Shown here piece after piece: positions 33,273 through 57,581 of a DNA stretch of 64,000 nucleotides. Numbering within the stretch: the stretch's first letter is position 1; every line of letters begins with the position of its first letter. Position numbers and translations under genes: made by a program. The DNA lies in the sequence record NC_049851.1. One strand, given 5' to 3'. Under the pieces are notes generated by a model. It did not search any database and was not told where the DNA came from. It was given only the letters and a program-made list of their open reading frames with translations.

Positions 33273-35003
33273 TTAAATTGCCTCTGGTGCCTTTTGCTGG
33301 GCTTCGTCCTGCTTAGCCACGGCCTCGATTGCTGCGTCCCACGCCTCTGCCGGAATGTCTCCGGAAGCTGCGTAGTCAGCCAGCGCTTCGATCAGGGAGT
33401 TGAGCGCTTCGACGTTCGACTCGGTGCCCGCACTCTTGTTCGTCAGCCCCTGACCTCCTTGGCCCGGGATGTCGATGTCGATTAGACGGAGCGCAGCGGT
33501 CACGGTAGCGGACTGGCGTGCGCCGTCGATTCCGAGTTCGTCGATCTCACGCTTCAGCAGTTCATGCCACTCTTGCTGTGACACGGGAACCCACTCGCAC
33601 TTGAAGTACCCCATCCCGGACTCTGCTTCGTCGAGACCCGCAAGTGCCGAGTGCGCTATTGTCCACAACCGCTCCGGGCCCAGATACTGTAGAGCCATGA
33701 AGAGAAGGGCACCTACAGGGCCCAGCTTCTCGATGGCTTCACGCATCGACGAGGATTGCAGCAGTTCGGCCATGATGCGGGCCGCTGTGTCTTGGCCACC
33801 AGACTGCTCGACTGCGGCACGGCGTAGCGCCGCGATCTTGCCGTTTGCGTCCGGCATATCGTGCATGATAGCCTTGGCCAGATTGCCTGAGTGTGCGCGC
33901 AGGTGGCCTGCGGCGTTTACACGGTCTTCGGAGCCGGGGGCGGTGCCGCCGTTGGCGATGAAGGCTTGTGCTTCACGCGCAAGCTTCGTCATTGCCACGC
34001 CTGCACGATCACCGCGTGGCGAGTACGGTGCGGAAGCGGGCCCGGGACCGTGCGTAGGCTTCGAACCAGCAGGGTGCGAAGGCGCGATATTGGGTGCTGG
34101 CTGAGCCGGACGCGGATTCTCGCGCTCGCGCTTCGTCTCCTTATCCTGCACGCCAACCCCGTGACCCTGACCGTACTCTTGCGCATACTTGCTCTTGGGG
34201 TGCTCCTTGACATACCGCTGTCGCATTTCCGGGGTCATGAATTCCCACCACTCGTCCTTCGGATCGTAGGTGTCCGAATGCTGGGAGTTCGGATGCGTCT
34301 CCGTGTACTTCTGACGCTGCTGCGGCGTCATGTTCCCCCACCAGTCCTCACCCTTGGCTGTGACCAGAAGGCGCGCTACCGCTTGCATATTCGTACTCCC
34401 ATTTTCGTCGTCGGTCTCCAGCCCGGAGCGAACGCGCGAGCGCTTTACGGGCTTACGCTTTGGCACACGCGGCTTGTAATCTGTCTTGGTGGTTTCGGCC
34501 AGCGCAAAGTCACTGCCGTAGGCGCGCTTGCGATCCTCGGCAGAGCGACGCTGCTCCGGCGTCAGCGATTTCCACTCCTTCTCCGGCATGTACACGTAGG
34601 TGCTCTTGTCCTTCCAGTAGCCATAAGGTGAGAACTGCTGCTTGGAGTTCAGCATAGCCTGCGTGTACTTGAACTTAACCTTACGCTTGGAGCCGTCTAT
34701 CAACTTGAACTCTGCACCGCTAGGCAGTCCGTTCTTGTTGTAGAAGACTCGCTTAGGAGTGCCACCCAAAGCCTCAACAAACCAGCCCCGTATCTTGGAG
34801 CTAAGTGTCTCCACGGCCACAGGGTCGAGTTCGTCGGACTCCAGTTCAACGTCACGCTCGTCAGGTTTAGCCCCGGGATGAAATCCCTGCGCGTACTTGG
34901 AATGTGGATGCTCCTTCAGGTATTCGCGCTTCTGAAAGTCAGATAGCGAATCGAACCACGTGGCAGACTCTACCAGCCGATGTTTCGCTGTGATAGTCGT
35001 CAT
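33273..35003 (-). CDS. putative virion/internal head protein with W-x3-T-P-x-Q...HP-x-SKY repeats
   Basis: 576 aa; internal repeats; position in the late block. Confidence 0.7.
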   Translation of the reverse strand: MTTITAKHRLVESATWFDSLSDFQKREYLKEHPHSKYAQGFHPGAKPDERDVELESDELDPVAVETLSSKIRGWFVEALGGTPKRVFYNKNGLPSGAEFKLIDGSKRKVKFKYTQAMLNSKQQFSPYGYWKDKSTYVYMPEKEWKSLTPEQRRSAEDRKRAYGSDFALAETTKTDYKPRVPKRKPVKRSRVRSGLETDDENGSTNMQAVARLLVTAKGEDWWGNMTPQQRQKYTETHPNSQHSDTYDPKDEWWEFMTPEMRQRYVKEHPKSKYAQEYGQGHGVGVQDKETKRERENPRPAQPAPNIAPSHPAGSKPTHGPGPASAPYSPRGDRAGVAMTKLAREAQAFIANGGTAPGSEDRVNAAGHLRAHSGNLAKAIMHDMPDANGKIAALRRAAVEQSGGQDTAARIMAELLQSSSMREAIEKLGPVGALLFMALQYLGPERLWTIAHSALAGLDEAESGMGYFKCEWVPVSQQEWHELLKREIDELGIDGARQSATVTAALRLIDIDIPGQGGQGLTNKSAGTESNVEALNSLIEALADYAASGDIPAEAWDAAIEAVAKQDEAQQKAPEAI

Positions 35004-35060
35004 TGTCTAATCCTTATGAAAAACAGGGCAATCTAATGCCCCGCTCCTTATTTACGAGGA

Positions 35061-35564
35061 TCAGTCGATCAGGTAGTCGAAGGCCCACGTGATGTTGAGG
35101 GTAACGAGGTTCGAGGCCGAGCCATCGAGTTCCACGTCTGCAACCGAAGCAGGCCACAGGCCGACGACGGTGATGGTGCGGCTCACTTCCGGCAGATCGT
35201 TGTACACCACAAGCTGAGCCGTACACTTGTAGGCGCTTGCAAACGAGCCGCTGTTGTTGAGCCACGAGCGCGTCATTTCGGACCACGCGTAGAACTGCGC
35301 ACGCGTGTTCCAGTCGCTCGATTCCATGAACGTAGTGTTGAACGTGTGTTCGAAGGTCTTGCGGCCCGCGTACACGAGTTCAACGCCGTGCAGTGGGACG
35401 GTCACGCGGTCCATCGAGAAGCCGGGGAGCGCGGTGCTCATGCACTTCCACGTGAGGGCGCGCGTGTCGCTCGAACCCGGGATCGCAGGCAGGAACAAGT
35501 CAAAGTTCCACGACTGCGCCGGGTCAGCTACGGCCTGAACGTCATACAGGCTAGAACGTGCCAT
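35061..35564 (-). CDS. tail tube protein
   Basis: 167 aa, beta-rich, T4 gp19-like pattern (...GLWPASVADVELDGSASNLVTLNITWAFDY); downstream of the sheath gene. Confidence 0.8.
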   Translation of the reverse strand: MARSSLYDVQAVADPAQSWNFDLFLPAIPGSSDTRALTWKCMSTALPGFSMDRVTVPLHGVELVYAGRKTFEHTFNTTFMESSDWNTRAQFYAWSEMTRSWLNNSGSFASAYKCTAQLVVYNDLPEVSRTITVVGLWPASVADVELDGSASNLVTLNITWAFDYLID

Positions 35565-35606
35565 AATTGTACTCCATGTTGAATTGGTTAGGTCTGCACG
35601 ATAAAA

Positions 35607-35960
35607 TTAACCGCCAGAGCCTACGGGCTGCACCGTACGATTCCACAGCGGATCAGGATCAAAACCACCAGACTGCCCAACGGGCAACGGTGTGTCGTCC
35701 ACGGCATCGTCGAACCCGGGGTTCGGTTTCATGTCGTGCTTGATCTGCGTGTTGTTGTACATGCTGTGGTTCAGGTCTTCGGCCATCAGTCGATGCGCTG
35801 CCTTGGTGGGCGCATGTTTCTCTGGGGCCTCGTCGCTGGCGTCGGTTTGCCTTTCGTTGAGATCGTTTTGGTTCTCCGGCCCGTACGAGCGCCCGGGAGC
35901 GATTGTGTCTCCCGGGATCGTGGACGTGGCCAGCAACCTGGTGGCTGCTTCGAGTTTCAT
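35607..35960 (-). CDS. hypothetical late protein (AAxRL motif)
   Basis: ORF between sheath and tube. Confidence 0.7.
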   Translation of the reverse strand: MKLEAATRLLATSTIPGDTIAPGRSYGPENQNDLNERQTDASDEAPEKHAPTKAAHRLMAEDLNHSMYNNTQIKHDMKPNPGFDDAVDDTPLPVGQSGGFDPDPLWNRTVQPVGSGG

Positions 35961-36002
35961 TCGGTGTCCTATTCAAAAACGGGGGCCAAGTGCCCCCGTT
36001 GC

Positions 36003-38000
36003 TTAGCGACCAGCCACCGACGACAGCGCTTCCGTGAACGACACACCCTGCTTGCTGATCACGACCTGCAAGTTGATGATGTGGATCGGGATCACCGGGA
36101 TGATGATGACCGTCACGTTGCGGATACCGCTGTTGAAGTCCTGCGCCGTGTTGTTCGAAGCATCCGACACCACCTTGAAGTCCGAGATACCCCGCGCGTT
36201 CTTGATGGTTTGCAGGTAGTCCGAGCACGACTGCACGATCTGACGACCCGTGAAGTCGTCGTTGGGCTCTTGCAGCGAGTACAGCAGGAACTGATAGAGC
36301 GCAACCTTGATCACGTTCACGATCCGGCGTACCGACAGCCACGACAGCGCGCTCATTTGCGCAGCCAGAGTCTGTTGTTCCCACAGCGCAGTGCCTTGAC
36401 CCACGAACGTCTGCGTGTAGTTGACTTGCGCTTGGAACAGGGCGTCCATCTGGCCTTGGTCGTACGTGTAGCGCGTACCCAGCACGTTGACGATGCCTCG
36501 GTTGAGGCCAGCAATCGAGAACGACGGGTTGGCCACGCGGTCGGTACGGGCGCACAGCGCAGCCGCCCAACCCGAGAACGGCACGTACTGTTGCTTGCCG
36601 TTGATCGTGTCGGCCTCCAAGACATCCGGGCAGAACAGCGCCGAGTACGTCGAGTTCAGGTTCAGTCGCAGGTTGCGATAGTTGATCGCTTGCTGGAACT
36701 GTTGCGAGTTCGACGGAACGTCAAGTAGTGCTACGCAATCGCCACGCTGCTGTGCAAGCGTATCCATTGCCAACTGAACGTCCGGGCTGCTGTGGCCCGA
36801 GTTGAGCAGGATGTTCACCTTGTACAGTTGCTTGTTCGCGAACACGTTCCACGCACCTGCCACTGCGGTCGACAGCGGAGCGGACCCCGAGTTACCCCCA
36901 GCCATTGCCTGCGGGCCGGTGCTCGTGATCACGGGCAGGGGCTGCGCCGGGTCCATCAGCGGCACGTACGAGGTGACGCGGATGTACTGCGAGAACGGGT
37001 TGATGGCCTGTTCGAGTTCTGTTTCCAGCCCCGTGCTGTCCGTGTAATCGGTCAGCGAGCACGTGAATTGCTCAACCGGGTACTGGTCACTGCGGCTCTG
37101 CAAGAAGACCGAGACACCGAATGTCGGGGGCGCGGCTGCTGCCTTCGACGGGTCGGTGATCGGCGGTTGCGTCGTGTCCGGAACAATCGAACCGTCGTCC
37201 GTGAACGTGATGTAGCTGTCGCCAGACTGCCCGACAGTGATCATGTAGCCCATGTTGTTGGCACCTTGCGTGCGGCCGTACACCTTGTAGCCTTGCGCGC
37301 CAGCAACGGGTTTCCAGTTCAGCACCACCTTGTTGGTGTTGGTGCCACCGGTCGCGATGACGATGGTCTGCGCCGACGACGCGACAGTTTCACCGTTGGG
37401 GCCGATGGTCGACACCTGATATTGGTACGTTCCAGCGGGCAGGATGCCGCCCGTGGTAGCCGACGAGATCGGGAGCGTCGGGTCCGGAGCAACCGGCCAT
37501 GCTGGAGCGGCCAACGCGCTGCTGCGGATCGCTACCATGTAGTCGTCCGCGTACGAACCCTGACCCTGACCCGGATAGAACAGGGCGATAGGGCGACGTG
37601 CTGTCGGTGCATACGTGCTCTTCAGCACGTCCCAACTTGGGATCGTCGGGTCCACGATGCCGCCCGTAATCGAAACGAGCTTCGTGCTACCGTCTTGCGC
37701 CTCGTAGGCCATGACCGCCGAGTACAGTGCGCCCGCGCCTGCAACACGGAGGGCCCAAAGCTGGCTGCCCTCCTTGAAGTAGTCGAGGCCGCAGTACACG
37801 TCGAACGAGATTTGCGCGTTCGGGTTGCCGTAGGCTGCGAGGTAGTCTTGTGCGTTCGTGTAGAGGACCGGCTTCGTCGTATCACCCTTGTTCGACACGA
37901 TGATCTGGGCGGCAACCGAAGTCGACGCCGCAGTGATCACCTGCGACAAGTTGATTTCTTGGACGATGACCTTGGAACCTTGATTTGCGGAAATCGGCAT
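36003..38000 (-). CDS. contractile tail sheath protein
   Basis: 665 aa; C-terminal sheath domain (SFSIAGLNRG...WEQQTL...LSVRRIVNVIK...IHIINLQVVI). Confidence 0.9.
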   Translation of the reverse strand: MPISANQGSKVIVQEINLSQVITAASTSVAAQIIVSNKGDTTKPVLYTNAQDYLAAYGNPNAQISFDVYCGLDYFKEGSQLWALRVAGAGALYSAVMAYEAQDGSTKLVSITGGIVDPTIPSWDVLKSTYAPTARRPIALFYPGQGQGSYADDYMVAIRSSALAAPAWPVAPDPTLPISSATTGGILPAGTYQYQVSTIGPNGETVASSAQTIVIATGGTNTNKVVLNWKPVAGAQGYKVYGRTQGANNMGYMITVGQSGDSYITFTDDGSIVPDTTQPPITDPSKAAAAPPTFGVSVFLQSRSDQYPVEQFTCSLTDYTDSTGLETELEQAINPFSQYIRVTSYVPLMDPAQPLPVITSTGPQAMAGGNSGSAPLSTAVAGAWNVFANKQLYKVNILLNSGHSSPDVQLAMDTLAQQRGDCVALLDVPSNSQQFQQAINYRNLRLNLNSTYSALFCPDVLEADTINGKQQYVPFSGWAAALCARTDRVANPSFSIAGLNRGIVNVLGTRYTYDQGQMDALFQAQVNYTQTFVGQGTALWEQQTLAAQMSALSWLSVRRIVNVIKVALYQFLLYSLQEPNDDFTGRQIVQSCSDYLQTIKNARGISDFKVVSDASNNTAQDFNSGIRNVTVIIIPVIPIHIINLQVVISKQGVSFTEALSSVAGR

Positions 38001-38002
38001 GA

Positions 38003-38248
38003 TTACTCCTTGGTCAGTTGCGGAGCCGCCTTATCAGCGGGCTTCGCGATTTCGATTGCCGGTTCCGGGACCGACACCTGAACGCAACCCGGGTTCAGGG
38101 CGCACCAACGCGCACACACCGTGTAGCCGTCCGGCAGATCAACATAGCGGCGGGCCATGATGCGCACGGAGCCTGCTGCTTTGCCTGCCGTGTCCACCAA
38201 ATCCACCTGCTGCGGAATCCGGCTGATGTTATTCACTTTCGTAGCCAT
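38003..38248 (-). CDS. hypothetical late protein
   Basis: ORF directly upstream of the sheath gene. Confidence 0.7.
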   Translation of the reverse strand: MATKVNNISRIPQQVDLVDTAGKAAGSVRIMARRYVDLPDGYTVCARWCALNPGCVQVSVPEPAIEIAKPADKAAPQLTKE

Positions 38249-38279
38249 AAGGGCTCCTTAACTTTTAGCTTGTTCTTCA

Positions 38280-38981
38280 CTAACTGCGATCTGGGAACGC
38301 GAGAAACTGCGTGCCGCCAAGGCGCTCACCAGCTTGCAACTTCGGCTCGTGCACGACGGGAATGCCGTCGTCGTTCAGCACATTGATGGTGTTGATGACG
38401 CCTATCTCGCCCAACACGGGTTCACTCGAATAGCCATGGATCGTGGCGCTTACCACAACACCAAATGCAGTTTCGGTTTCCGTCACGTTCCCTAGCGATG
38501 GCGTAGTGATGCTCGAATCCAGAGTGACGCCAACACCGAACTTCAGGCGTCCGTATTGAACGCTTGACTTCAGATAGCCACCACGCCGGGCCAGCAACCA
38601 ACGCCGGGCGAACGCCATAACCGAGCCTTGCTCTACCGATTGGAACTGGTTCGTGACATACGTGATCTCGATCTCGAAATCCGTTGGGATCACGCGGACC
38701 GTTTGTACGGTCGACCCCGAGTTCACGTTCACGAACATGCCACGGCGCATCAGGTTGTGCGGGTTGTAGGACTCCGTATTTTCCGAGACCTTCTTGACCT
38801 CGAAGAAAGCATACGGATAACTGAAGTTCTTGTTGCCCTTACCGAACAGGCGCTCCATAACCACGGCCTTGTCATTCGAGTTTACGAACGCGGTCTTGGC
38901 GCAGTCGAACGTCTGCTGGAAGCGCTGCTGAAACCCTGCGAACACGAGGTAGTCGATGGGTTCTATTGTTGTTGATGCCAT
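38280..38981 (-). CDS. putative tail completion/terminator protein
   Basis: position before the sheath gene; size and beta pattern; GGAGG RBS. Confidence 0.5.
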   Translation of the reverse strand: MASTTIEPIDYLVFAGFQQRFQQTFDCAKTAFVNSNDKAVVMERLFGKGNKNFSYPYAFFEVKKVSENTESYNPHNLMRRGMFVNVNSGSTVQTVRVIPTDFEIEITYVTNQFQSVEQGSVMAFARRWLLARRGGYLKSSVQYGRLKFGVGVTLDSSITTPSLGNVTETETAFGVVVSATIHGYSSEPVLGEIGVINTINVLNDDGIPVVHEPKLQAGERLGGTQFLAFPDRS

Positions 38982-39000
38982 GCTGGCCTCCAGATACGAC

Positions 39001-39034
39001 AAAAGCCCGACGGCTTGAAGACCGACGGGCTTTT
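39001..39034. terminator. bidirectional intrinsic terminator after the capsid unit
   Basis: AAAAGCCCG...CGGGCTTTT. Confidence 0.75.
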
Positions 39035-39037
39035 GGG

Positions 39038-39391: not shown

Positions 39392-39453
39392 TGCGTTCTC
39401 CTGAATGTTGTCCGATGTCTAAGTCAGAACCCGGGCGAACCCGGGCTCAGCGT

Positions 39454-40542
39454 TTAGACGCGCAGGCCAGCAGCCACCGAACGCGAGTTCGCGACCGAGA
39501 TAGCCAGCGACTCGAACATCACCCAGCCGCGACCCGGCACCTTCTCGATGCTGATGTCGATCGGCTGCGATTGCAGGCCGCCGCGATCCGAGTACGCACC
39601 GTGGTTCAGCGCGTCCGAGATCACGAAGAACTCGCCTTGATCCAGCACCTTGTGCTCGCGGTGACGGTACGCGTCCGACGTGATCGCGCAGCCGTACAGC
39701 GTACCGAGTTCACCGGTCAGCAGGAGTTCGTGACGCGCAACCGGGTCGATTGCCGTGAAGAAGTCCGAGTTGCCGATGATGTCCTGATACAGGTCCGACG
39801 CCATCAGAACGTGCGGTGCCTTCAGGCCCCAGCGCGTGACGTTCGTCATCACTTGCGCGAACGTGTACGGCGTGAGTTGGCCGCTGATGATCGAGAGCGG
39901 GTTGTCCACACCGATCAGTGCCTTGACCTGCGAATACCACAGACGGTCTTCACCGACCATGATTGCTTCGGTCGCTTCGACGTACTTCTCTTGCAGCACG
40001 TCACCGGCCGACTGGTTCAGTTCGTTCTGCGGAATGAACGGTCGCGTGACCAGTTGCAGTTCCGGCGGCGTGAACCACTTGTCGCGCGTGATCTGCGCCT
40101 GAATCTTCGTCGGGCTCGTCGAGTAGACGGCCGTCACGTTCTTCGTGCGCAGCGGGAAGCGAACGATTGCGCCTTGCTCCACGTCGATACGCGTCAGGTA
40201 CTTCCGTGCGAAGCCCTGACGGTTACACGTGATGTACAGCGAGTCGGCCATACGCTCGCCCAGCACGCGGTGCGCTTCGCTGTCGTTGAACGCAGCCTGC
40301 ACCAGTTCCTTGCTGATCTTCGCGCCTTGCTCTGCCGACGCGAACACTGCGTCGCTGGCGGTTTCACCGCGCGAGCTTGCTGCCAGAAACTCCATCTGGC
40401 GGTTCATGAGTTCGCGCTTGCTGCCCGCGTTCAGTTCACCGTTGTGGCCGACAGCGCGCTCGTTCGAGCCTTCGAAACGAAATTCGGAAGCTGCGACCAT
40501 GGGCTTCTTCGTCGCAGTCACTTGGATTTTGTTGGTACGCAT
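39454..40542 (-). CDS. major capsid protein (HK97 fold)
   Basis: 362 aa with highly biased codon use; follows protease, scaffold and head accessory genes; capsid-like C-terminal pattern. Confidence 0.8.
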   Translation of the reverse strand: MRTNKIQVTATKKPMVAASEFRFEGSNERAVGHNGELNAGSKRELMNRQMEFLAASSRGETASDAVFASAEQGAKISKELVQAAFNDSEAHRVLGERMADSLYITCNRQGFARKYLTRIDVEQGAIVRFPLRTKNVTAVYSTSPTKIQAQITRDKWFTPPELQLVTRPFIPQNELNQSAGDVLQEKYVEATEAIMVGEDRLWYSQVKALIGVDNPLSIISGQLTPYTFAQVMTNVTRWGLKAPHVLMASDLYQDIIGNSDFFTAIDPVARHELLLTGELGTLYGCAITSDAYRHREHKVLDQGEFFVISDALNHGAYSDRGGLQSQPIDISIEKVPGRGWVMFESLAISVANSRSVAAGLRV

Positions 40543-40637
40543 ATGTTACTCCGTGTTGGTTGGGAGTCCCCGGCTTCGAGGACTCCTGAATTCATGTCGT
40601 TAGGACTGAATTAAAATTACCGATTGTGCGTCGCTGC

Positions 40638-41439: not shown

Positions 41440-43146
41440 TTACATACCGAACGGCAGTGCAGCTTCACCCGAGAGGATTGCTGCTGCGGTGACCGACATG
41501 CCGCCACGACGCGAAGCCGTCGTTGCTTGGCGGCGGGGCGACGCGTAGCCCGGGCGTGCCGAGAACAGCGCAGCCTTCACCGAGGTCGGTGCGCGCGAAT
41601 CTTCTTCGAACTGGTCGACGAATTCCGGACCGCCATCGCATGCTGCCGCGTCGGTTTCGTGATCGTCTTCGTCCTCGTCCATGCCCTCGTCATCGCCCAG
41701 CATGTTCAGTGCCGTGACGTGCGAATTGCGGACTTCGACCGGGAGTTCACGCAGTTGCGAGGCAATCGTCAGAATCGCCTTCGCGTAGTCGACGCCTGCG
41801 CTTGCGAACACACGACGGATCAGCTTCTCGGCACCGCGCACGCCCGCAGCCGAGAACTCGGCTTCCAGCGATGCACGCAGTTCGTTGCGAACGTCCTTGA
41901 AGTAGCCAGCGCGGTTGATACCGACAGCCGCGATTGCCATACACTGGTCCATCGCCTCGTCTTGCGCTTGCGCTTCGGCGCGCAGGCCAGCCGTCAGCTT
42001 CAGGGCCTTGGCTTCGACGCGCTTGTTCAGCACGTCAGCCTTGCCCAGATTAACGGTTGCGAGAACGAAGCCCATGCCCTTCAGACCGGCACGCAGACCG
42101 TGCTTTTCCATTTCGCTGGCCGTGACCGATGCGAAGTTGTCCGAAAGATACATCTTGTCGACACCGGCCTTGACTGCTTGGCGCTGCGACAGGTTTGCGA
42201 TCACGCGCGGGCCCTTGAGAACGCGCACGTCGGTGCCCACGTTTGCGAACACCACGTCGTCCACGTCGTCGTCCGGCACACCGTCGATGTCGACGAGCGG
42301 CATTTCTTCTTCGGCCGGTGCGTTCTGGAGGATTTCGTCGTCCGTCACCGTGTCCAGTGCCGGAGTCGTCACACCCGGTTCGTCTTCAGCGTCTTCGAAC
42401 GTGTCGACATCGGCAACTGCGCCCGGTTCGAGCATCAGCGATTGTTCGGTAGCGCCTGCACCCGGTTCGAGTTCCGCACCCGAATCGGCGTTCGGAAGCA
42501 CCGGAGCGGTGCCCGGTTCTGCGCCGTCGGTAGGGGTTTCGCCCGTCGTGATGTAGCCGTCTGCCGGATCGATGTCGTTCGGCATCGTCTGCGTCGACTG
42601 CTGGCCGACTTCACCGGTCTCGTGGGCACGACGCGAAGCCAAGCCATCGCCTGCGGCCTCGACGCCCGAATCCGTGTGCGTGTCTTCCGACGCGTCCGGA
42701 TCGTTGTGGATCGCGGGGCCTGCGGGAGCCTCGTCGTTGCGCAGTTCGTCAGCGATGTTCGGGCTCTGGTCTTCGAAACCGGCCTCGGTCGGAACCTTGG
42801 GCTTCGATTGCGGTGCCAGCTTGACTTCGCCCGGATGCTTCTTCGGCTTGTCGAGCGCCTTGCCCGGTTCGACCTTCGGGCCGCCTTCGTCAGCAGCCGC
42901 CGTGGTCTTGCCGCCGTTCATGCGGTTTGTCTTTTCCGAGAACTTCGTGTCGTTGTTGAAGTGCGTCGAACCGCCCGGCTCTTCGCCCGGCTCGTGCAGC
43001 ATTTCAGCCTTCGTCGAACCGTGACGCAGTTTCACTTCCGAGGTCTCGGCCGCTTTCGTCGTTTCGTTCGGGAAGTGGAGCGAGGTGGAAGCCGCGTTTT
43101 CGCGAGCAGCCACGACTTGTTCCTTTTCTTTCGTCAGGATTGCCAT
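41440..43146 (-). CDS. prohead scaffold/core protein
   Basis: 568 aa, very acidic low-complexity N-terminal half and helical C-terminal half; directly after the protease. Confidence 0.6.
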   Translation of the reverse strand: MAILTKEKEQVVAARENAASTSLHFPNETTKAAETSEVKLRHGSTKAEMLHEPGEEPGGSTHFNNDTKFSEKTNRMNGGKTTAAADEGGPKVEPGKALDKPKKHPGEVKLAPQSKPKVPTEAGFEDQSPNIADELRNDEAPAGPAIHNDPDASEDTHTDSGVEAAGDGLASRRAHETGEVGQQSTQTMPNDIDPADGYITTGETPTDGAEPGTAPVLPNADSGAELEPGAGATEQSLMLEPGAVADVDTFEDAEDEPGVTTPALDTVTDDEILQNAPAEEEMPLVDIDGVPDDDVDDVVFANVGTDVRVLKGPRVIANLSQRQAVKAGVDKMYLSDNFASVTASEMEKHGLRAGLKGMGFVLATVNLGKADVLNKRVEAKALKLTAGLRAEAQAQDEAMDQCMAIAAVGINRAGYFKDVRNELRASLEAEFSAAGVRGAEKLIRRVFASAGVDYAKAILTIASQLRELPVEVRNSHVTALNMLGDDEGMDEDEDDHETDAAACDGGPEFVDQFEEDSRAPTSVKAALFSARPGYASPRRQATTASRRGGMSVTAAAILSGEAALPFGM

Positions 43147-43276: not shown

Positions 43277-44170
43277 TTACGTTAAAATTGAGTTCTGCGA
43301 ATTGTTACGCGCCACAGAACCAAAATCCACCACGTTGTCCGAAAGTGCCGGTGCCCACGCCGGGTCCTTCACAATCGAACACTCAATCGGCTGAATTCCG
43401 TGAGCATTCAGGAATGCCAAATGAGTAGAGCCGTCGAAATCGCGATATTTCTTCCAGTTCACGTTTTTCGTGCCCGTGATGTGGCCACACGTGTGTCGCG
43501 TAGAGCACGAAGCCCCGCAATAACCGCACGTGAAATACTCGACAAGAGCACCCATCGAGTAGGTGTTGATTTCCTTCGTCAGCACTTTCTGCGCGACATC
43601 CGGATACTTGTTCTTGTCGATGGCCAGTAGCCCCATCACCTTCCACAGCTTCCCGTCACCGTAGCCCTCGACCTTGTGGAACGACGCATCGAGGATGATG
43701 CCGTACGCACGTTCGTGGACTTCGTTGTCGTGTTCTAGGTGGACTGGGCAACCCTTCCACGCCTTATACGACATGCGGTTCGTCGGGGGCGGCAGGAAAC
43801 GCGCGAGTTCATCGCGCGGAAACGCGATACCGTTTCGGTTCGGGATATCGGACGGACACACCAGCGTGTTGACGATGATGTAATCCTCGATGCGCGGGCT
43901 GATCTTGTAGGTTTGTGCTGCGAACGGAAGCCACGTTTCGTAGTCCAGACGAGATACCAATGTCTGGTCCTTCTCTGCGTCCATCGTTTCCTGTGCCACA
44001 CCCACGTTGTCACCACGCCCCGTGCGTATAGCCTCGTGCTGCGCTTCACCGGGATCGATCTCGGGTGCGTGGCGTGGATTCAAGTTCTCGATTTCGTGTG
44101 GAGTCGTAGTGGAGTCCGAACGAACCTGTTGGGGTTTCTTGCCCCATGCGCTTGGCATCATTGGTTTCAT
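43277..44170 (-). CDS. prohead maturation protease
   Basis: PNRNG...PVHLEHD...SMG...CxxC...CxH pattern of phage head proteases; upstream of scaffold and capsid genes. Confidence 0.7.
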   Translation of the reverse strand: MKPMMPSAWGKKPQQVRSDSTTTPHEIENLNPRHAPEIDPGEAQHEAIRTGRGDNVGVAQETMDAEKDQTLVSRLDYETWLPFAAQTYKISPRIEDYIIVNTLVCPSDIPNRNGIAFPRDELARFLPPPTNRMSYKAWKGCPVHLEHDNEVHERAYGIILDASFHKVEGYGDGKLWKVMGLLAIDKNKYPDVAQKVLTKEINTYSMGALVEYFTCGYCGASCSTRHTCGHITGTKNVNWKKYRDFDGSTHLAFLNAHGIQPIECSIVKDPAWAPALSDNVVDFGSVARNNSQNSILT

Positions 44171-44179
44171 ACAGCCTCC

Positions 44180-44590
44180 TTACTTCGCGGCTGCGTAGAA
44201 CTCGGTGCCCGCAGTTGCAAACGTGAGGCGCAGCGCCGAGAACACCGGAATCGTAGCCATCGTGATTGCGCCCGTGCCCGGAACCGTCAACTCGCCTGCG
44301 GTGTCCCAGACAACAGATTCCTGTACAGCAGGGTCCGGGTCGGTTGCGAGACCTGCGTTCGAGAGTGTGAACGCCACTTTCACCGAACCGCCCTTGGCCT
44401 GAAACGCGAACCCCAGTTGGGGCAGTCGCGAATTCGAGGCCAGTTCGGACACCGAAACGTAGGCAACGTCACCGTCCGCTTGCGACGTGGCACCGAACCA
44501 ACCGATAACACCGTCTGGAACCGAAGCCGCGCCAATACCGCGCACACCGTTTCGATACGGTGCGTGATTACCTTGCAGTTTGACCGCCAT
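44180..44590 (-). CDS. putative structural protein
   Basis: 136 aa, beta-rich; AAGGAG RBS. Confidence 0.65.
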   Translation of the reverse strand: MAVKLQGNHAPYRNGVRGIGAASVPDGVIGWFGATSQADGDVAYVSVSELASNSRLPQLGFAFQAKGGSVKVAFTLSNAGLATDPDPAVQESVVWDTAGELTVPGTGAITMATIPVFSALRLTFATAGTEFYAAAK

Positions 44591-49810: not shown

Positions 49811-49831
49811 TCGAGTCCTATCTAAAACGAG

Positions 49832-49865
49832 AAAGGCCCCGATAACCTTCGCTATCGGGGCTATT
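49832..49865. terminator. intrinsic terminator
   Basis: GCCCCGATA...TATCGGGGC with T-tails. Confidence 0.65.
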
Positions 49866-49902
49866 CCTGCAAGTCTACCACAGGTCTGATCTATTTACTA
49901 CA

Positions 49903-50610: not shown

Positions 50611-50611
50611 G

Positions 50612-51064
50612 TTACTGGCCCATGAGGCGACGTGCCGCCGAGATCGCGATGCTGTTGTCCGCGACGGCTGCGGTAACGGAAGCCAGTTGCACGTCGTCAC
50701 GTTCGAGTTGCTGTTCGTGGCTCGGCGTGTCGAAGCCGCCGTCATCGTACAGGTCTGCCTGATCGCGCGCGTCACCTGCCCCCATGTTCGGCGCGCTGTC
50801 ATTGAGGGCAACCCGATCCGGGCTCGTGGTGCCGGGATCGTAGTCATCGACCAGCACCTCTTGGTCCTTCGACAGCGGAGCCGCCTGCTGCTCCAGCGGC
50901 TGGCCGCTCTCTTGCTGCCCGAGCATGCGGTAGCTGATGGCTTCCAGCGTCTCGTGGTCGACGCCCACCGATTCAGCCAGCATGTGGAACTGCTGATCGC
51001 TCGGCTGCGGGTTGATCTGGAGGAAGAGTTCGATCAGCGCTTCCAGAATTTGCGGATTCTTCAT
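50612..51064 (-). CDS. acidic hypothetical late protein
   Basis: AAGGA RBS. Confidence 0.7.
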   Translation of the reverse strand: MKNPQILEALIELFLQINPQPSDQQFHMLAESVGVDHETLEAISYRMLGQQESGQPLEQQAAPLSKDQEVLVDDYDPGTTSPDRVALNDSAPNMGAGDARDQADLYDDGGFDTPSHEQQLERDDVQLASVTAAVADNSIAISAARRLMGQ

Positions 51065-51073
51065 GTGTAGTCC

Positions 51074-51391
51074 TTAACCGCGACGTGCGCGGTGCAAGTG
51101 GTTATGTCGCTTGTCGTGGCAACCTTGGCAGAGGCTGATGAGATTGGCCGGAGAGTTCGTGCCTCCCGACGACAGGGGCACCAGATGATGCACCTCGTTT
51201 GCCGGTTTCTTGCACTGCTTTCCTCCGATAAGGGCACGGCAGAGACCACCGTCTCTCGCGATGATCTTGGCCCTGATCTCCCACCAACCCGCTTTCGTCT
51301 GCATCCCGTTGACGGTGTTGTAGTTCTCGCGTCGGATTGACCCGACACCAGAACTGCCACGACGTGCGCTCCTGATTCGGCGTGCGAACAT
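51074..51391 (-). CDS. HNH endonuclease
   Basis: RDGGLC...C...EVHHLVPLSSGGTNSPANLISLCQGCHDKRH; TAATG overlap start. Confidence 0.9.
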   Translation of the reverse strand: MFARRIRSARRGSSGVGSIRRENYNTVNGMQTKAGWWEIRAKIIARDGGLCRALIGGKQCKKPANEVHHLVPLSSGGTNSPANLISLCQGCHDKRHNHLHRARRG

Positions 51392-51786
51392 TATGCGCTG
51401 AAGAAGATGCGCAGGTCTTTGCCGATGCGCTGGATCACGATGCGGTGCTGGCCCTTGCACGAGAAGTTCGGGCGCGAGAGAACACCCTTGTGCACCATCA
51501 TCTTGTACCCCATCTTGTTCAGGATGTTGATGGTAGCCTGCGCTTCGTCCTCGATTTCGAGCGGATTGCTCTTGTGGAAAAGATGGTTCCTGCCCATCGA
51601 GTAGCGCAAGCGATTGCTGCCGAGAGTGGTGCGCACGTGTTCGAGTTCGTGATCACGTGCGGTGTCAAACTTGCCATCGACCTCGACATCTGCTGCGACA
51701 GGAGTTTCGTGGCCCGGTGCCAAATGCTCGGCGCGGGGTTCGGGTGCTGTCGCGAGCAATCGCTTTGCTGCTTCTACTGCAAACAT
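51391..51786 (-). CDS. hypothetical late protein (AAxRL motif)
   Basis: AGGAG RBS. Confidence 0.7.
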   Translation of the reverse strand: MFAVEAAKRLLATAPEPRAEHLAPGHETPVAADVEVDGKFDTARDHELEHVRTTLGSNRLRYSMGRNHLFHKSNPLEIEDEAQATINILNKMGYKMMVHKGVLSRPNFSCKGQHRIVIQRIGKDLRIFFSA

Positions 51787-51848
51787 ATTATCTCCTGAGA
51801 TTAATGCAGTTTGGGGGCACTAGGCCCCCGGTACTACTTAAATTGCGG

Positions 51849-53402
51849 TCAGTAGCTGTTGGCCACCACAGCACCACGGGCCACGCCGTAGGCCGGTGAG
51901 AAGCGACCCCACGCGGAAGCCGGAGTGATGGTCACGCCGACTGCGCCGATAGCCCCCTGCGCCAACCGAGTCGGGTCCTGAGAACCGTCGCCGCTCGTCT
52001 GCCCCTTGATGATGAGGTTGATCTTGATGTCACGCAACTCGTTGTCAAGGCGCTGCTGGATGATGCGTTGGGCCTCGTCCAGATAACGCGTACGATCCAC
52101 GCTCAACGAGATCGCAGCGCCTTGGAAGTCGAACGCCTTCTCGCCCTCAGCCAGAAACTGCGATTGAAGCGCCGCCATTTCGGCTTCCAGCAACCAGAAC
52201 TCACGAATCACACCACGAGCATTCGTCATCGTGAAGTTCGTGAACTTGCCGTACGCACCGTTGAACGCGTCCATGCCGCGTCGCAGCCACGTCAGGATCG
52301 TGGGGTGCGGATACAGCAGGTCGGGCGTCCCATAGAGCGTCGTGCGTGCCTTGTTGATCTTGGCCTTTACGTCCGTGATCGCGGTCATGATGCTGGGGTT
52401 GATGATCCAGAGGTCTGCCGACTCCTGAACCACGTTCGCTGCGTTGTTGCTCGCCCAGTATTTCCAGACCACGGTGTACGGGATCAGGGTGACTGCGAAG
52501 TCCGAAGTCGACACCACACCCGAGAACACGTAGCCGTTTGCCGTTCGTTCGTAGTCGGTGATCGGGGTCTGGGCCGCGACTTGATTGCCGTCGATCCAGA
52601 TTTCCAGAGTCACGTTGTCGTACGGCTTGTCGACGCAGATGCTGAGTGTCGCGGGCACGCCCTTCAACTCGACCTGCGGCTGCGTGCCCAGCGGCACCGT
52701 GTTGAGGCCGACGACACGCACGTTCTCGAACTGATAGAACCGATTCTGGCCCGGCGTGCCGGTCAGTGGATCAGCGCCTATGCCGATGTCCTGCGGAAGT
52801 TCCAGCGTGTAGCGAAGCTGATACTTCTGGCCTTCCAGCGACGGGGGAACCGTTGTCGGAATCGAGACCACGGACTGGGCGACCACCATGTGCGACAGGC
52901 CGTCGCTCTGGACCGTGTACGAGAACGCGTTACCTGCGGCGTACACGGTGCCATCTGCGGCCAACAGTTCCCAGACGACAAATCCGCCCGTAGGATCGGT
53001 CTCAGCCGGGAACGTATAGACGGAGGTTGCGATAGCCGCGTTCCCGGCCTCGATGGTGTCCACGAGGTCGGTGAATGCTTCAGGGTTCTCCGTCTTGTAC
53101 GGAACGAACGACGGGTCTTTGGCAGTGATCGCACACACCACAACGAACGTGCGTGCCTGTGTCGTGACCGTGAGGTTGACGCCGTAGCTAACACCGTCTC
53201 GGCCCCCCTGCGTCAGCAGCACAACCTTCGGGTTAGTCGGGTCCGACGTTAGTGTGGCGGTCAGCGCCGGGTTTGTGCCCGGTTCCGGTGTGCCGACCAA
53301 CACGTTGGTCAACGTCTCGCCCGGGTCCAGCAGGGGCGAAATGTCGACGTTGATCGACGTGTCGGTTTCGGGCACTTTGAAGAATACAAAGCGCCCGTCC
53401 AT
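51849..53402 (-). CDS. putative neck/head-tail connector protein
   Basis: 517 aa; helical C-terminal adaptor-like domain; late block. Confidence 0.5.
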   Translation of the reverse strand: MDGRFVFFKVPETDTSINVDISPLLDPGETLTNVLVGTPEPGTNPALTATLTSDPTNPKVVLLTQGGRDGVSYGVNLTVTTQARTFVVVCAITAKDPSFVPYKTENPEAFTDLVDTIEAGNAAIATSVYTFPAETDPTGGFVVWELLAADGTVYAAGNAFSYTVQSDGLSHMVVAQSVVSIPTTVPPSLEGQKYQLRYTLELPQDIGIGADPLTGTPGQNRFYQFENVRVVGLNTVPLGTQPQVELKGVPATLSICVDKPYDNVTLEIWIDGNQVAAQTPITDYERTANGYVFSGVVSTSDFAVTLIPYTVVWKYWASNNAANVVQESADLWIINPSIMTAITDVKAKINKARTTLYGTPDLLYPHPTILTWLRRGMDAFNGAYGKFTNFTMTNARGVIREFWLLEAEMAALQSQFLAEGEKAFDFQGAAISLSVDRTRYLDEAQRIIQQRLDNELRDIKINLIIKGQTSGDGSQDPTRLAQGAIGAVGVTITPASAWGRFSPAYGVARGAVVANSY

Positions 53403-53777
53403 TTAAGCACCTGCCGCGAGACGTTGTGCCGCCGTGATCGTGGGGGCCGAGTACAGGTTCGGGCCCGCGCCCGTGTCTTCATCCGGGTCCTGCACTTCTT
53501 CGACGTTCGTGTCGATCTTCGGCGGTGCGTCGGCCGTATCGATTTCGTGCTCCGGCTTCGCGGCTTCGGCGTCGTCACCGTGGAGCGATGATGCATAGAG
53601 GCGCGTTGCCGCGTTGAGTTCGATGGTTGCAGTTGCGTTCGTCATGATTTGCTTCTCCATTTTGCAGGCTGTGCACCACCCATCCGGACCACCGCATTTA
53701 GTGCGCATGCCGTCCGGACGTGGGCGCACGTGCCCATGACCCGAGTTCGGGTTGTTGATGTCAAAATCGAAACTCAT
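53403..53777 (-). CDS. hypothetical protein with an N-terminal GHGHV-x-PRPDG...CGG...C-x2-C module
   Basis: ORF packing; His/Cys module. Confidence 0.65.
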   Translation of the reverse strand: MSFDFDINNPNSGHGHVRPRPDGMRTKCGGPDGWCTACKMEKQIMTNATATIELNAATRLYASSLHGDDAEAAKPEHEIDTADAPPKIDTNVEEVQDPDEDTGAGPNLYSAPTITAAQRLAAGA

Positions 53778-53783
53778 TTTCGA

Positions 53784-54620
53784 TTACTTCAGTGCGGGCG
53801 GCAGGTCGCTACCCAGCGGTGAATCGAATCCTTCGTCAGCCAGCATAGAGGCTGCGGCTTCGCAAACCTGCTGAACATCCCGAAGGGGCGTTGTGCGTTC
53901 AAGGCTGTCAGGCGCACAGAACTCTTGGTTGATCTGCACGAAGTAGCCCGAGCCCAGAACCCATTGCAGCGATACGTACAGTGTCGGCACACGTCGGCCG
54001 TCATCGGCCTGCGCACCGCTCAGCATCGTATACGACGTGAAGACAAGGGAGCCAGAAGCATCCACGTTCACGTACAGGAACTGTTCGGTCCCGGCACACC
54101 GCACGTGGTTCTCCAGTTCTTGGGCCAGCGCCTGACGCACGTGATCGAAGGCTTCGGGCACATGCTGGTGTGCAACTGCCGACAAGAATTCGAGGACCCG
54201 ACGAATCTGGTCTTTACCCTTGGCCTTGAGTTCGGCCAGTACCTGCTGCACACGGGCCGCCACTTCACCACGTCGATCAGGGAACTGGAGCGCCACCTGA
54301 GCCTCAACGGCTTCAAGTGCGCGATACTGGTCATAGATTTCCTCGGCAGTACCATACTGCGCATCCAGCTTCTTGACGTGCGGGACGACCACGCGCTTGA
54401 TCGTCGCGTCGACCGAGGCTCCACGCAGACTTGCTGTTACGTTCTCCTTCGGTTTCGTGAGGTAGGCCACTGCCTGTTGCTGGACTCGAATCAGGTTCTC
54501 GGACTCGGACACGTCGTCCCGAAGCTTGTCCAGATAACGCGATACGTCATCCAGATAGCGGAACTTCGGTAGCTCCAGCGTGCACGCGCGCGGCTCCTGA
54601 TAGGTCTTTGGCTTTGCCAA
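53784..54620 (-). CDS. hypothetical late protein
   Basis: AGGAG RBS; 278 aa. Confidence 0.7.
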   Translation of the reverse strand: MAKPKTYQEPRACTLELPKFRYLDDVSRYLDKLRDDVSESENLIRVQQQAVAYLTKPKENVTASLRGASVDATIKRVVVPHVKKLDAQYGTAEEIYDQYRALEAVEAQVALQFPDRRGEVAARVQQVLAELKAKGKDQIRRVLEFLSAVAHQHVPEAFDHVRQALAQELENHVRCAGTEQFLYVNVDASGSLVFTSYTMLSGAQADDGRRVPTLYVSLQWVLGSGYFVQINQEFCAPDSLERTTPLRDVQQVCEAAASMLADEGFDSPLGSDLPPALK

Positions 54621-55856
54621 TTACGTTCTCCTGATACCTGTTACGTTGTCCCGTGCCATCAGCGTGGTCGGAGGCTTCGTCTGGGTGCGGGCACGGCGTG
54701 GTAGCAACCGGAAAATTTCCTGTGGCTGCGTTACCCGAACCATGGCTTCCCACCCCAAGATGTTGCGCTCACGCGTGTTCCACGGGTTGGTGTTCTGCAC
54801 CATCAGAGCCTTGCCAAACTGGCGCTCGACGATGATGTCCTCGGTGTCGGCACGCGGACAATTCGGGCTCATGATGATGTTGAAGGGTTCGTCTTTCTCC
54901 AGAAGTGCCGTGTTGTTGCCGGACGGCCGCTTCGGAAATTCAAAGTACACCGACTCTGCGCTAAGCCCGAACTGTAGTTCAAGGTGCGTGAATCGTGTAA
55001 AGCCGGAGGCCCCTAGAATGTGTTGACGCCCATCACAGAACTGCATGAAGTGCTGGGCGCTGCGGATCGGCACGCTGTCGACCGTGAAGCGTGCCGGTGT
55101 CGGCTCTGTATCGTTCCAGACGCGCAGCGCGTCAACGAGTATGGCACCGCGCGGCAGCACCACCCGCACGTCAAAGCCCGTTGCGTCCACTGCTAGAGGC
55201 CGTGCCAGCGTGTCAATAACGCCGCCATCACGCACCTGCACGTCAGTACACGTCAACACCTGCCGGTGGCCACGGAACGGGGTGTACCCACCAATGTAGC
55301 CAGAGCCAAAGCAGATCGGGCACGAGTTGTCGGAATGCCCCATCATACCGGCATCGAGATCACCGATGGCCTCTTCGACAGTCTCAGCCTGCACCGGCCC
55401 GTTGTCACCAAACCCGTTTCCGTTGATCAGGTCTGCGAACGGTATGTCGTCAAGATTCTCTGCGTTGTCCGGGTGTACCGCAACGTCAAAGACGCCTTGG
55501 TATTTGTTGTCCGGCGCGTTCGGGCTCGACTGACCTTCCGGGACCTTCCGGTTCTGGTTGTAGGCAGTGACGTTGAATTCCAGCGCGCCGCTGATCATCT
55601 GGTTGATGGCACCGAGGCTGGCCTTGCCCTCTTCGTTGAGCAAGCCGTTGATGCGTTTGCGCCGGGCCTGACACGTGCACGGGCGACCATTCGTGAGTTT
55701 CGTGTACAGGATAGACTCGATACCCTGCGGTCGAAACGCGTTGTAATAACGCTGCTGCATGACCGGCAGGATTTCTTGAATCGCCTTTTCCGCTACGTCG
55801 GCTGCGCGAGAGTTCGCGGCCAAGATGCGGTTGTTGTTTGATTCGCGTACGGGCAT
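54621..55856 (-). CDS. putative head-closure/neck protein
   Basis: CxC and CPICFGSGYIGGY motif typical of jumbo-phage neck proteins; AGGAGG RBS. Confidence 0.5.
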   Translation of the reverse strand: MPVRESNNNRILAANSRAADVAEKAIQEILPVMQQRYYNAFRPQGIESILYTKLTNGRPCTCQARRKRINGLLNEEGKASLGAINQMISGALEFNVTAYNQNRKVPEGQSSPNAPDNKYQGVFDVAVHPDNAENLDDIPFADLINGNGFGDNGPVQAETVEEAIGDLDAGMMGHSDNSCPICFGSGYIGGYTPFRGHRQVLTCTDVQVRDGGVIDTLARPLAVDATGFDVRVVLPRGAILVDALRVWNDTEPTPARFTVDSVPIRSAQHFMQFCDGRQHILGASGFTRFTHLELQFGLSAESVYFEFPKRPSGNNTALLEKDEPFNIIMSPNCPRADTEDIIVERQFGKALMVQNTNPWNTRERNILGWEAMVRVTQPQEIFRLLPRRARTQTKPPTTLMARDNVTGIRRT

Positions 55857-55931
55857 AAGCCCTCCTAAACTATCACTACTGCATAAAATTGCGAGATCAA
55901 AACGGCAATAAGGGGCGCAAGGCCCCAAGTT

Positions 55932-56294
55932 TTACAGCTTGTACATGAGTGACGACGCACAGTGCACACCGTACCGCAAATCCGGCATCACGGTTTTCGT
56001 GCTGTGCACCTTCACGTTCTTCGGATCGAGCATCCGGTCGACGGTGATGAATCCATCCATGTTGATGGTGATTCGGTGCCCACGGCGTCGATGGTTGAAG
56101 TCGACGGACCGTGCGTACCAGCGCGTCTCCCACAATTCTTTGTGTTCCTCAGCCGTCTTCTTGAGCGCATCGATACAAAGGTCCCAATTGCGGTTGCGCT
56201 TGGCGTGTCGCGTATCAGGTTCTGCGTGATGTTCCCAGAAGAAGTGGGGCTTCGAGCCTTCGTGGACGGTGTGCGAGCGGGCTGGACGCGTCAT
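55932..56294 (-). CDS. hypothetical protein
   Basis: ATGA overlap with the deaminase. Confidence 0.6.
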   Translation of the reverse strand: MTRPARSHTVHEGSKPHFFWEHHAEPDTRHAKRNRNWDLCIDALKKTAEEHKELWETRWYARSVDFNHRRRGHRITINMDGFITVDRMLDPKNVKVHSTKTVMPDLRYGVHCASSLMYKL

Positions 56295-56740
56295 TCGCCC
56301 ACCTTCCGGACGATAACGCCCGATGCTTGCAGGAGAGGAAGACCGTTCGACCGCTCGTATACGTGCTGGTACACGACCTCGCGAATCTTGGCCCGGATCG
56401 TGTGGAGTGCGCACGGAATGCACGGCCCGTGCGTCGTGTACATGCGAGCGCCTTCCGCGCTTGCGGTCGATCCCGAGAACTTGGACAGTGCGTTGAACTC
56501 AGCGTGCATCACCGTCGGCTTCGTCACCATTTCGAGGCGAGCCACACCGTGTGCACATTCGGTGATTGCATGAAACCGCGTATCGTTTTCGTGGCCCGGT
56601 GGCGTTCCGTTCCAACCCAGCGTGATCATGTCATCCGGTGTCACAATCGCGCAACCGACTCCGTGCTTCGGGTCCACCGACATGGATGCCGCAGAACTCG
56701 CGATCTCCATGTAAAGCATGTCTTCGTTCTCTCGTTGCAT
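56291..56740 (-). CDS. dCMP deaminase
   Basis: VGCAIV...GWNG...HAEFNAL...THGPCIPC zinc deaminase motifs. Confidence 0.9.
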   Translation of the reverse strand: MQRENEDMLYMEIASSAASMSVDPKHGVGCAIVTPDDMITLGWNGTPPGHENDTRFHAITECAHGVARLEMVTKPTVMHAEFNALSKFSGSTASAEGARMYTTHGPCIPCALHTIRAKIREVVYQHVYERSNGLPLLQASGVIVRKVGE

Positions 56741-56789
56741 CTAAATCCTCTGTAAGTGATGTAGCTAAACATTCTACATCACCTGCAAA

Positions 56790-57005
56790 TTATTTACTAC
56801 CGTTTTCTTTCGAATCCAGTAGCCGCTCGGCCGCGTGCAGTTCCACACCGCCAGTCATCTTGTGGTAGATGTAGTTCTGCAATGCGTACTTGTTGTCCGG
56901 GTGGGATTTCTTGGCAGCGTCCCCTGCCTTGTCCCACTTCTTCTCCAGCGACTCCTTGCTGCCCTTTCCTTCCTTAACGTCGTGCTTGATCATGTTGTTC
57001 GGCAT
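56790..57005 (-). CDS. small basic late protein (AAxRL motif)
   Basis: GGAG RBS. Confidence 0.65.
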   Translation of the reverse strand: MPNNMIKHDVKEGKGSKESLEKKWDKAGDAAKKSHPDNKYALQNYIYHKMTGGVELHAAERLLDSKENGSK

Positions 57006-57023
57006 TTCAGTCTCCGCGTTGAA

Positions 57024-57581
57024 TTACACTTGCGAGTGTTGTTCGGTGTTTTGTTGATCTTGTTCGATTTCGTGCGAATTGTATCGAGGCGTGAGATTTC
57101 GGAAGAAGTTGATCGTCTTCATCGAGGGATCGTCGTTTAGCAACGCCTTGACGCCAACGTGCAAAGGCTGCACATCGCTTACTTCGTCGACCCAAACTGC
57201 CTGCGCCGTTTCCCAGTTCAGCGTGGGCTCGAATTCGTGCGGTACGATTGCCAGAAAGTTCTGGTAGCTCATGCCGTGGCCACGGAATACGAGAAGGGGC
57301 ATCAGCTTGACGGGGCCACGATACCCTGCTTCTTCCTGCACCTCGCGGCGCACCGCCTGTGACACGTTCTCACCGTGGTCGACAGCACCTCCCCATGTCC
57401 CCCAGCAGTTCGGGTCGGACACGCCCTCTGAACGCAAAGGCATCAGGAATCGCCCGGTGTCGGCCGCCATGATCAGGCACCCGGCACACACCTTACCCCA
57501 GTAGTTAGGATCGCTAGTCACGAGCGGGGGCAACCACTCGGTATCGCGGATATCGGTCAACAATCTGTACGCTGCTTCCAT
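57024..57581 (-). CDS. NUDIX hydrolase
   Basis: Nudix box GGAVDHGENVSQAVRREVQEEAG. Confidence 0.9.
   Translation of the reverse strand: MEAAYRLLTDIRDTEWLPPLVTSDPNYWGKVCAGCLIMAADTGRFLMPLRSEGVSDPNCWGTWGGAVDHGENVSQAVRREVQEEAGYRGPVKLMPLLVFRGHGMSYQNFLAIVPHEFEPTLNWETAQAVWVDEVSDVQPLHVGVKALLNDDPSMKTINFFRNLTPRYNSHEIEQDQQNTEQHSQV

Follow-up and report, generated by a model that had tools for sequence, protein, structure and literature searches.

AAxRL-tagged proteins of Burkholderia jumbo phage BcepSauron and its relatives: a lineage-specific peptide that may load cargo into the prohead

Short peptides that carry proteins into a protein shell have been described in several settings. The cargo-loading peptides of encapsulins are short, stand at either terminus and dock cargo enzymes inside an HK97-fold shell. 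Among phages the closest described systems are those of T4 and P1: the leader of T4 IPIII and the first 30 residues of P1 DarB are both proven capsid-targeting sequences (CTS) (PMC9024508), while DarA of P1 undergoes cleavage and becomes part of the head (PMC5512222). Here, a peptide tag with the core AAxRL is described on a dozen unrelated proteins of the Burkholderia jumbo phage BcepSauron, and on proteins of its relatives. The window, that is, the whole 64,000-nucleotide stretch of DNA analysed, corresponds to bases 1–64000 of the BcepSauron genome (262,653 bp; identity 100%). The original prediction, made from the window's sequence, was that one short tag is common to otherwise unrelated proteins, mostly at their ends, and that it recruits cargo to the prohead core or marks cleavage sites. 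The observation is confirmed and greatly extended, and capsid targeting appears on our analysis to be the best supported reading of it. No earlier description of the AAxRL tag was found in the searchable literature.

In format the tag resembles the T4 signal. In T4 a peptide of about 10 residues stands at the extreme N-terminus of several unrelated proteins (IPI–III and Alt) encoded near the head genes; one short N-terminal peptide common to several otherwise unrelated proteins was likewise found here, and a dedicated head protease is encoded in both phages (43277–44170 in the window). Those carriers that are small, fast-changing and often disordered orphans with a constant leader recall the T4 internal proteins; to our knowledge there is no likeness in sequence between the T4 leader and the AAxRL tag. 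The tag differs from the T4 signal in that it also sits at C-termini and in linkers, in that it occurs on up to 18 proteins per genome in lineage-specific flavours, and in that packaging of the AAxRL proteins is only predicted and removal of the tag by the protease only a possibility. In both cases the carrier genes turn over fast and the leader stays (in part after PMC9024508 and PMC5512222). As in P1, where an N-terminal signal of at most 30 residues puts DarB into the head (PMC9024508), the tag can be N-terminal and short, and tagged proteins of two uncultivated relatives possess the DarA_C domain. The N-termini of the P1 Dar proteins are without a consensus (PMC9024508), whereas the AAxRL consensus is strict. 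A further difference from P1 is that BcepSauron has no DarA_C protein. Encapsulin peptides are likewise short and terminal, at either end, and the BcepSauron capsid protein matches the structure of phage G gp27; they are, however, extended Gly/Ser/Leu motifs and not an Ala-Ala-x-Arg-Leu helix.

The BcepSauron proteome was derived with a simple codon-usage caller (433 genes), which agreed exactly with RefSeq for 42 of 44 genes and for 44 of 44 stop codons. All the peptides of the original prediction were found at the genes named, every one on the minus strand. The pattern AA.RL was observed 15 times in this proteome, compared with 4.1 ± 1.8 in residue shuffles, and is thus commoner than in shuffled proteomes, a comparison that had been proposed as a check; AA.RL[LMYIA] was observed 11 times against 1.3 in shuffles. 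With a looser pattern there were six N-terminal copies (0.88 expected) and seven C-terminal copies (0.94 expected), internal copies showing no enrichment (6 vs 9.0 expected), which confines the excess to protein ends. A scoring matrix made from the N-termini of phages BCSR5 and Motura only recovered nine BcepSauron sites of at least 11 bits, as against 1.75 in shuffles, the top scores being the predicted sites in 35607–35960, 51391–51786 and 53403–53777. Two further tagged genes lie outside the window (151820–152089 and 175135–175620). The labels "late" and "virion" for the tagged proteins derive from gene position only.

These counts bear on the notion that the motif arose by chance or from composition (Ala-rich helices, the genome being 58% G+C), is a result of paralogue ancestry, or is a nucleotide or translation-start signal. 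Alanine, arginine and leucine are common residues and the motif was picked after the sequence had been read, but both the residue shuffles and the independent matrix speak against chance, as does a clustering of N-termini that was blind to the motif, in which the tag is the main cluster in all four phages (BcepSauron, BCSR5, Motura and phiRSL1). The genome of phage PhiXhv-12, similar in composition, is without the motif. Some tagged genes are tandem paralogues (in Motura and in the uncultivated genome G003), which would suit ancestry; the carriers nevertheless have unrelated folds, and paralogy was rejected as the source of the tag for most of them by all-against-all BLAST of the proteins minus their first 14 residues, in which the only links were between orthologues or within a few sets of tandem paralogues. 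Well-translated genes often begin with M-K, which would suit this group of explanations; C-terminal and linker copies kept in orthologues speak against it. Across the motif copies every codon for alanine, arginine and leucine is used, and the signal is therefore one of peptide and not of DNA; a nucleotide-level element such as a promoter or downstream box was rejected, as codons vary and no base conservation exists at synonymous positions. Already contradicted by these tests, explanations of this group are highly improbable.

The claim of a single short tag on unrelated proteins holds clade-wide. Whole genomes were compared from phiRSL1, BCSR5 and Motura (76%, 73% and 61% identical to BcepSauron in the capsid protein) and from the distant relatives Xanthomonas phage PhiXhv-12 (42%) and Erwinia phage Y3 (34%), and uncultivated relatives were represented by 61 capsid-gene loci from IMG/VR and four large genomes (G001–G004). 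Phage BcepSaruman has a capsid protein 100% identical to that of BcepSauron, and the DNA of the region is 97% identical. Ten BCSR5 proteins start with M-K-I-E-A-A-A-R-L-K-A or a close variant, about 15 Motura proteins start with M-x-I-Q-A-A-x-R-L-x-A, and seven phiRSL1 proteins possess the variant M-Y-[DE]-I-K-A-A-V-x-R-L, three of which need non-annotated start codons. The latter concern ORF111, ORF126 and ORF133 (L011, 60001–80000), with annotated starts at 60166, 69491 and 77328; from starts 60211, 69428 and 77367 the tag stands at residue 1. PhiXhv-12 has no AAxRL tag, and N-terminus clustering detected no common N-terminal tag of any kind in it. A start-codon-anchored scan of the 61 uncultivated loci gave 40 starts of at least 14 bits, two of them alternative starts of one gene; in six frames 47 of 1.17 million windows reached this score, 44 of the 47 on the capsid-gene strand. 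The four large uncultivated genomes each contain 9–18 tagged genes, and in G004 nine proteins display the flavour M-x-F-A-x-R-[VIL]-L-[AS].

Such flavours distinguish the lineages. A hydrophobic residue follows R-L in 12 of the 13 BcepSauron copies compared with 4 of 33 in the other three phages (p = 5e-7), and the phiRSL1 copies have an extra residue in common, which is present also in the linker motif of the 56790 family described below. Orthologues with the DUF3175 domain each carry the flavour of their own phage; at the tag, unrelated proteins of one phage are more alike than orthologues across phages. Judged from these alignments, the flavour changes in concert within each lineage. Likeness of this sort across unrelated carriers would be expected if all of them had one receptor that evolves together with the tag. 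BcepSauron and BCSR5 each have a Burkholderia host and yet differ in flavour, which argues against a conserved host protein and for a receptor that is probably phage-encoded. In Erwinia phage Y3, a jumbo phage of the same superclade (L125:8676–9134, minus strand, and other loci), more than 10 proteins start with M-x-phi-x-phi-S-L-S-A-[KR] or possess a longer leader that ends in S-x-S-A; a NUDIX hydrolase, a protein of 1951 aa and one with a KMPT-N domain are among them. The design is the same as that of the AAxRL tag, in that many unrelated proteins, NUDIX included, start with M-x-phi-x-phi and then a short invariant motif, whereas the motif itself, S-L-S-A-[KR], is different. That the NUDIX protein is tagged in two lineages with differing tags argues that tagging itself is under selection.

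The tagged sites of the window, all on the minus strand, are as follows. The 117-aa protein 35607–35960, encoded between the tail sheath and tube genes, starts with MKLEAATRLLATS (35922–35960; 18.1 bits by the BCSR5 and Motura matrix) and contains a second, internal copy, TKAAHRLMAE (35778–35807); no orthologue of this protein was found. The 131-aa protein 51391–51786, the gene of which adjoins that of the head-tail connector, starts with MFAVEAAKRLLATA (51745–51786; 19.5 bits). Its orthologues in phiRSL1 (ORF120), BCSR5 and G001 keep a tag, the remainder being only 32–36% identical. The protein 53403–53777 ends in the top-scoring BcepSauron site, ITAAQRLAAGA (53406–53438, the final 11 residues; 19.6 bits), and also contains IELNAATRLYASS (53586–53624). 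From the annotated start of this gene (gp093; 53777) the latter tag begins at residue 52 and its motif lies at residue 54, while from start 53645 the tag is at residue 10; the predicted motif is thus present, and near-N-terminal only if 53645 is the true start.

The acidic, disordered 150-aa protein 50612–51064 possesses the C-terminal tag ISAARRLMGQ (50615–50644), which is kept at the C-terminus in the orthologues of BCSR5 (IAASTRLKVNFED) and G001 (LKAALRLTESAG). In the phiRSL1 (twice) and Motura orthologues the motif is internal, and the BCSR5 protein has an additional N-terminal tag, so in this family the motif shifts place between C-terminal, N-terminal and internal positions from phage to phage. 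In the 71-aa protein 56790–57005 the sequence LHAAERLLDS (56811–56840) is present as predicted but is better regarded as a conserved linker motif of a family longer in the relatives than as a terminal tag; it lies near the end because the BcepSauron protein stops early. In every orthologue the motif follows directly upon a conserved N-terminal domain, appearing in phiRSL1 in that phage's flavour (TAAVQRL) and joining the domain in Motura to a NUDIX domain. The NUDIX hydrolase 57024–57581 (PF00293) itself starts with MEAAYRLLTD (57552–57581), and the NUDIX proteins of phiRSL1 (MKINSAFRLLVTS) and G002 (MKINSVFRLKATA) are also tagged, so that this enzyme bears the tag in three phages and, in Motura, in the linker of a fusion protein.

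The 576-aa protein 33273–35003 starts with the variant tag MTTITAKHRLVES (34965–35003), followed by a module of the form W-x-x-L-S...Y...HP-x-S-K-Y. The same start of tag plus W-module is found in G002 (MIKINAARRLMASWFDSL) and, in the G004 flavour, in G004 (MDFANRVLATNWWDEL). An internal repeat of the variant tag, MQAVARLLVTA (34356–34388), again has the W-module next to it. A third match, VTAALRLIDI (33474–33503, residue 501), is a doubtful member: it is internal, is not supported by the relatives and may be due to chance. An atlas search with the whole 576-aa protein returned low scores only (TM at most 0.22). The W-module, W-[WF]-x-x-[LM]-[ST]-x-x-x-[KR]-x-x-Y-x-x-x-H-P-x-S-x-[YH], occurs three times in this protein (residues 16–38, 218–244 and 251–273), two of the copies directly behind a tag-like helix. 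In proteins of G002, G004 and Motura it likewise comes after the tag, and in L096:6384–7733 it stands ahead of the DarA_C domain. Elsewhere in the window the C-terminal FSALRL of 44180–44590 matched the loose pattern and was rejected as a tag, since it is conserved along with the rest of its domain in 4 of 4 orthologues and is read as part of the fold.

The carriers are a mixed set. DUF3175 was identified by Pfam match on tagged proteins of BcepSauron (two genes), BCSR5 and Motura, and by similarity to the BcepSauron genes in G001 and G004, G001 possessing a fusion in which the unit of tag and DUF3175 stands twice. A homospermidine synthase of G001, with saccharopine dehydrogenase domains (L146:3160–4608, minus strand), has the N-terminal tag MKVQIHAAQRLLED. 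Two tagged proteins, in two uncultivated relatives, contain DarA_C (PF18789). The remaining carriers are orphans, and Pfam and PHROGs searches revealed nothing for most of them.

We consider it somewhat probable that the tag is a docking helix which loads cargo into the prohead in the manner of the T4 and P1 capsid-targeting sequences; of the two roles originally suggested, it is recruitment to the prohead core that is retained as the best supported. The tag would be a short linear docking peptide of about 12 residues, consensus M-x-[ILV]-x-A-A-x-R-L-x-A-[ST], with a hydrophobic residue after R-L in BcepSauron. It would probably form a short amphipathic helix, placed at a free terminus or within a flexible linker, and the spacing of the conserved residues would fit one helix face. 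This helix may bind one phage-encoded part of the assembling prohead, the candidates being a scaffold-like protein of 568 aa, the capsid protein (by its inner face or its propeptide) and the head protease. Tagged proteins would thereby be enclosed in the head and leave it later with the DNA, as is the case for the T4 internal proteins and P1 DarB, and the head protease may or may not then trim the tag, cutting at a Glu residue close by. Prohead loading is favoured because the tagged genes cluster around those for the capsid, protease and connector, because tagged proteins of relatives carry the DarA_C domain of a P1 head-internal protein, and because the format matches the T4 and P1 signals (PMC9024508). 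In six genomes 56 of 77 tagged genes (73%) lie within 30 kb of the capsid gene, as do 24% of all genes. Those of BcepSauron flank the connector gene, stand between the sheath and tube genes or, outside the window, follow a short way downstream of the portal gene.

Several observations weigh on the other side. One tagged gene lies among the tail-fibre genes and one between sheath and tube; with such surroundings a tail or other virion target is possible. The NUDIX orthologues of BCSR5, G003 and G004 are without the tag, as is the homospermidine synthase of phiRSL1, which is 58% identical to that of G001, and some carriers are metabolic enzymes (NUDIX, homospermidine synthase), the packaging of which is not obviously useful. 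No DarA_C domain was found in BcepSauron, phiRSL1, BCSR5, Motura or PhiXhv-12. In the literature searched there was no virion proteomics for phiRSL1, BcepSauron, BCSR5 or Motura; a Matilda preprint presents infection proteomics only, and a paper on an Erwinia Agrican357virus deals with another clade and crude lysates. Co-folding of a 30-residue tag together with three head proteins (capsid protein, protease and residues 290–568 of the scaffold-like protein) gave no answer, at low model confidence, which is evidence neither way.

Some of these points would suit a different target: the tag might dock its carriers onto a hub other than the prohead. This could be another part of the virion (neck or tail), a chaperone of assembly, a phage factory for replication or assembly, or else a protease or unfoldase by which the turnover of the carriers is timed. 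Carriers that are enzymes without an obvious role in the capsid, tagged genes in tail regions, and use at either terminus as well as in linkers, which is typical of general docking motifs, are all in keeping with such a hub. The strong concentration of tagged genes around the capsid, protease and connector genes and the DarA_C domain on some carriers are not, and we regard a hub of this kind as rather unlikely.

The three candidate receptors are encoded close together. The head maturation protease (43277–44170, minus strand; phrog_18299, E = 9e-88) is also the candidate processing enzyme. On the protease of the relatives only one weak look-alike of the tag was seen (L099, 3.4 bits), and it was dropped. 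The 568-aa scaffold-like protein (41440–43146, minus strand; from alignment) is encoded between the protease and capsid genes. Its N-terminal half is acidic and disordered, and conservation is seen in a middle region that starts near residue 290 and again in the C-terminal tail; the BCSR5 orthologue contains an internal tag at residue 78. A second repeated motif, [GS]-S-T-x-(L)-H-[FY], occurs in the N-terminal part of this protein and is kept in phiRSL1, BCSR5 and Motura. The major capsid protein (39454–40542, minus strand) has an N-terminal extension of about 70–100 residues, as judged by structure match and AlphaFold model. Of the solved structures it matches that of the phage G capsid protein gp27 alone (6wkk_A), over residues 79–357, and the model places extra helices ahead of the first strands at about residue 136. 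Residues 5–21, [KR]-phi-x-phi-x-A-[ST]-K-x-P-x-V-x-A-[ST]-E-[FY], are kept clade-wide, and the start of the capsid protein has the beginning phi-x-phi-x-A-A in common with the tag.

The nearby protease raises the alternative that the motif is solely a recognition or cleavage site of the head maturation protease, without a role in targeting. In PaBG, a relative, the capsid protein loses about 20% of its mass on maturation and several virion proteins are processed (PMC7412058), as this alternative would expect. The best-conserved segment of the capsid propeptide, F-[LI]-x-A-A-S-x-G at residues 52–59, includes [LI]-x-A-A-S and so matches the tag, but only in its first half. The tail of the tag, L-x-A-[ST], resembles the sites of herpesvirus assemblin. 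Against cleavage, AAxRL is absent from the BcepSauron capsid protein (39454–40542), scaffold-like protein (41440–43146) and protease (43277–44170), unlike the prohead-protease motif in the substrates of T4 gp21 and phiKZ gp175. The trimming of 6–12 residues from an extreme end has no evident purpose, and the terminal bias with no internal enrichment fits docking better. A Glu-containing site downstream, [ASTG]-x-E in the 14 residues that follow the tag, shows only weak enrichment (13 of 40 vs 19% in controls; p = 0.03), and the conserved candidate cleavage site A-x-E of the capsid protein (residues 69–71) is deleted in part of the clade. The suggestion that the tag marks cleavage sites is therefore not sustained in the form in which it was made; the tag itself is probably not a protease cut site, and a purely proteolytic role is improbable.

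A wider proposal is advanced tentatively. The phiRSL1-like jumbo phages may possess a lineage-specific packaging code readable from the genome: a 12-residue helix, at either end or in a linker, that would load 10–18 proteins per phage for injection, NUDIX hydrolase and homospermidine synthase included, and that would co-evolve with a head-internal receptor. If this is true, the whole injected proteome of a jumbo phage, usually made up of orphan anti-defence and host-takeover factors that are hard to find, could be predicted from the genome sequence. In BcepSauron it would comprise about ten genes, and unexpected injected enzymes would be indicated, such as NUDIX and, in one relative, homospermidine synthase. 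A short, portable peptide would then also be available to package foreign proteins into Burkholderia and Ralstonia phages, and the differences in flavour between lineages are a natural experiment by which the receptor might be traced. The tag is useful, too, in the assignment of start codons: judged by it, several phiRSL1 genes and one BcepSauron gene look wrongly annotated at the start.

The head and tail genes around the tagged genes are on the minus strand. The genes of the region, on this strand, specify the tail tube, sheath, major capsid protein, a virion structural protein, the 568-aa protein and the head maturation protease, together with a 1534-aa helicase, the head-tail connector protein, a deaminase and the NUDIX hydrolase. 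An endonuclease gene and a possible second one were noted in the window. The former, at 30204–31175, on the opposite (plus) strand, has an N-terminus which by eye is GIY-YIG-like and sits in the window's stretch of lowest G+C (0.555–0.561 vs about 0.59). The other is an unannotated 99-aa open reading frame on the minus strand (51061–51360), in the gap between gp090 and gp091, which by eye is HNH endonuclease-like, with the Cys/His motifs EVHHLVP and CQGCHDKRH in its translation; an HNH endonuclease is among the features of the BcepSaruman record beneath the match to this region.

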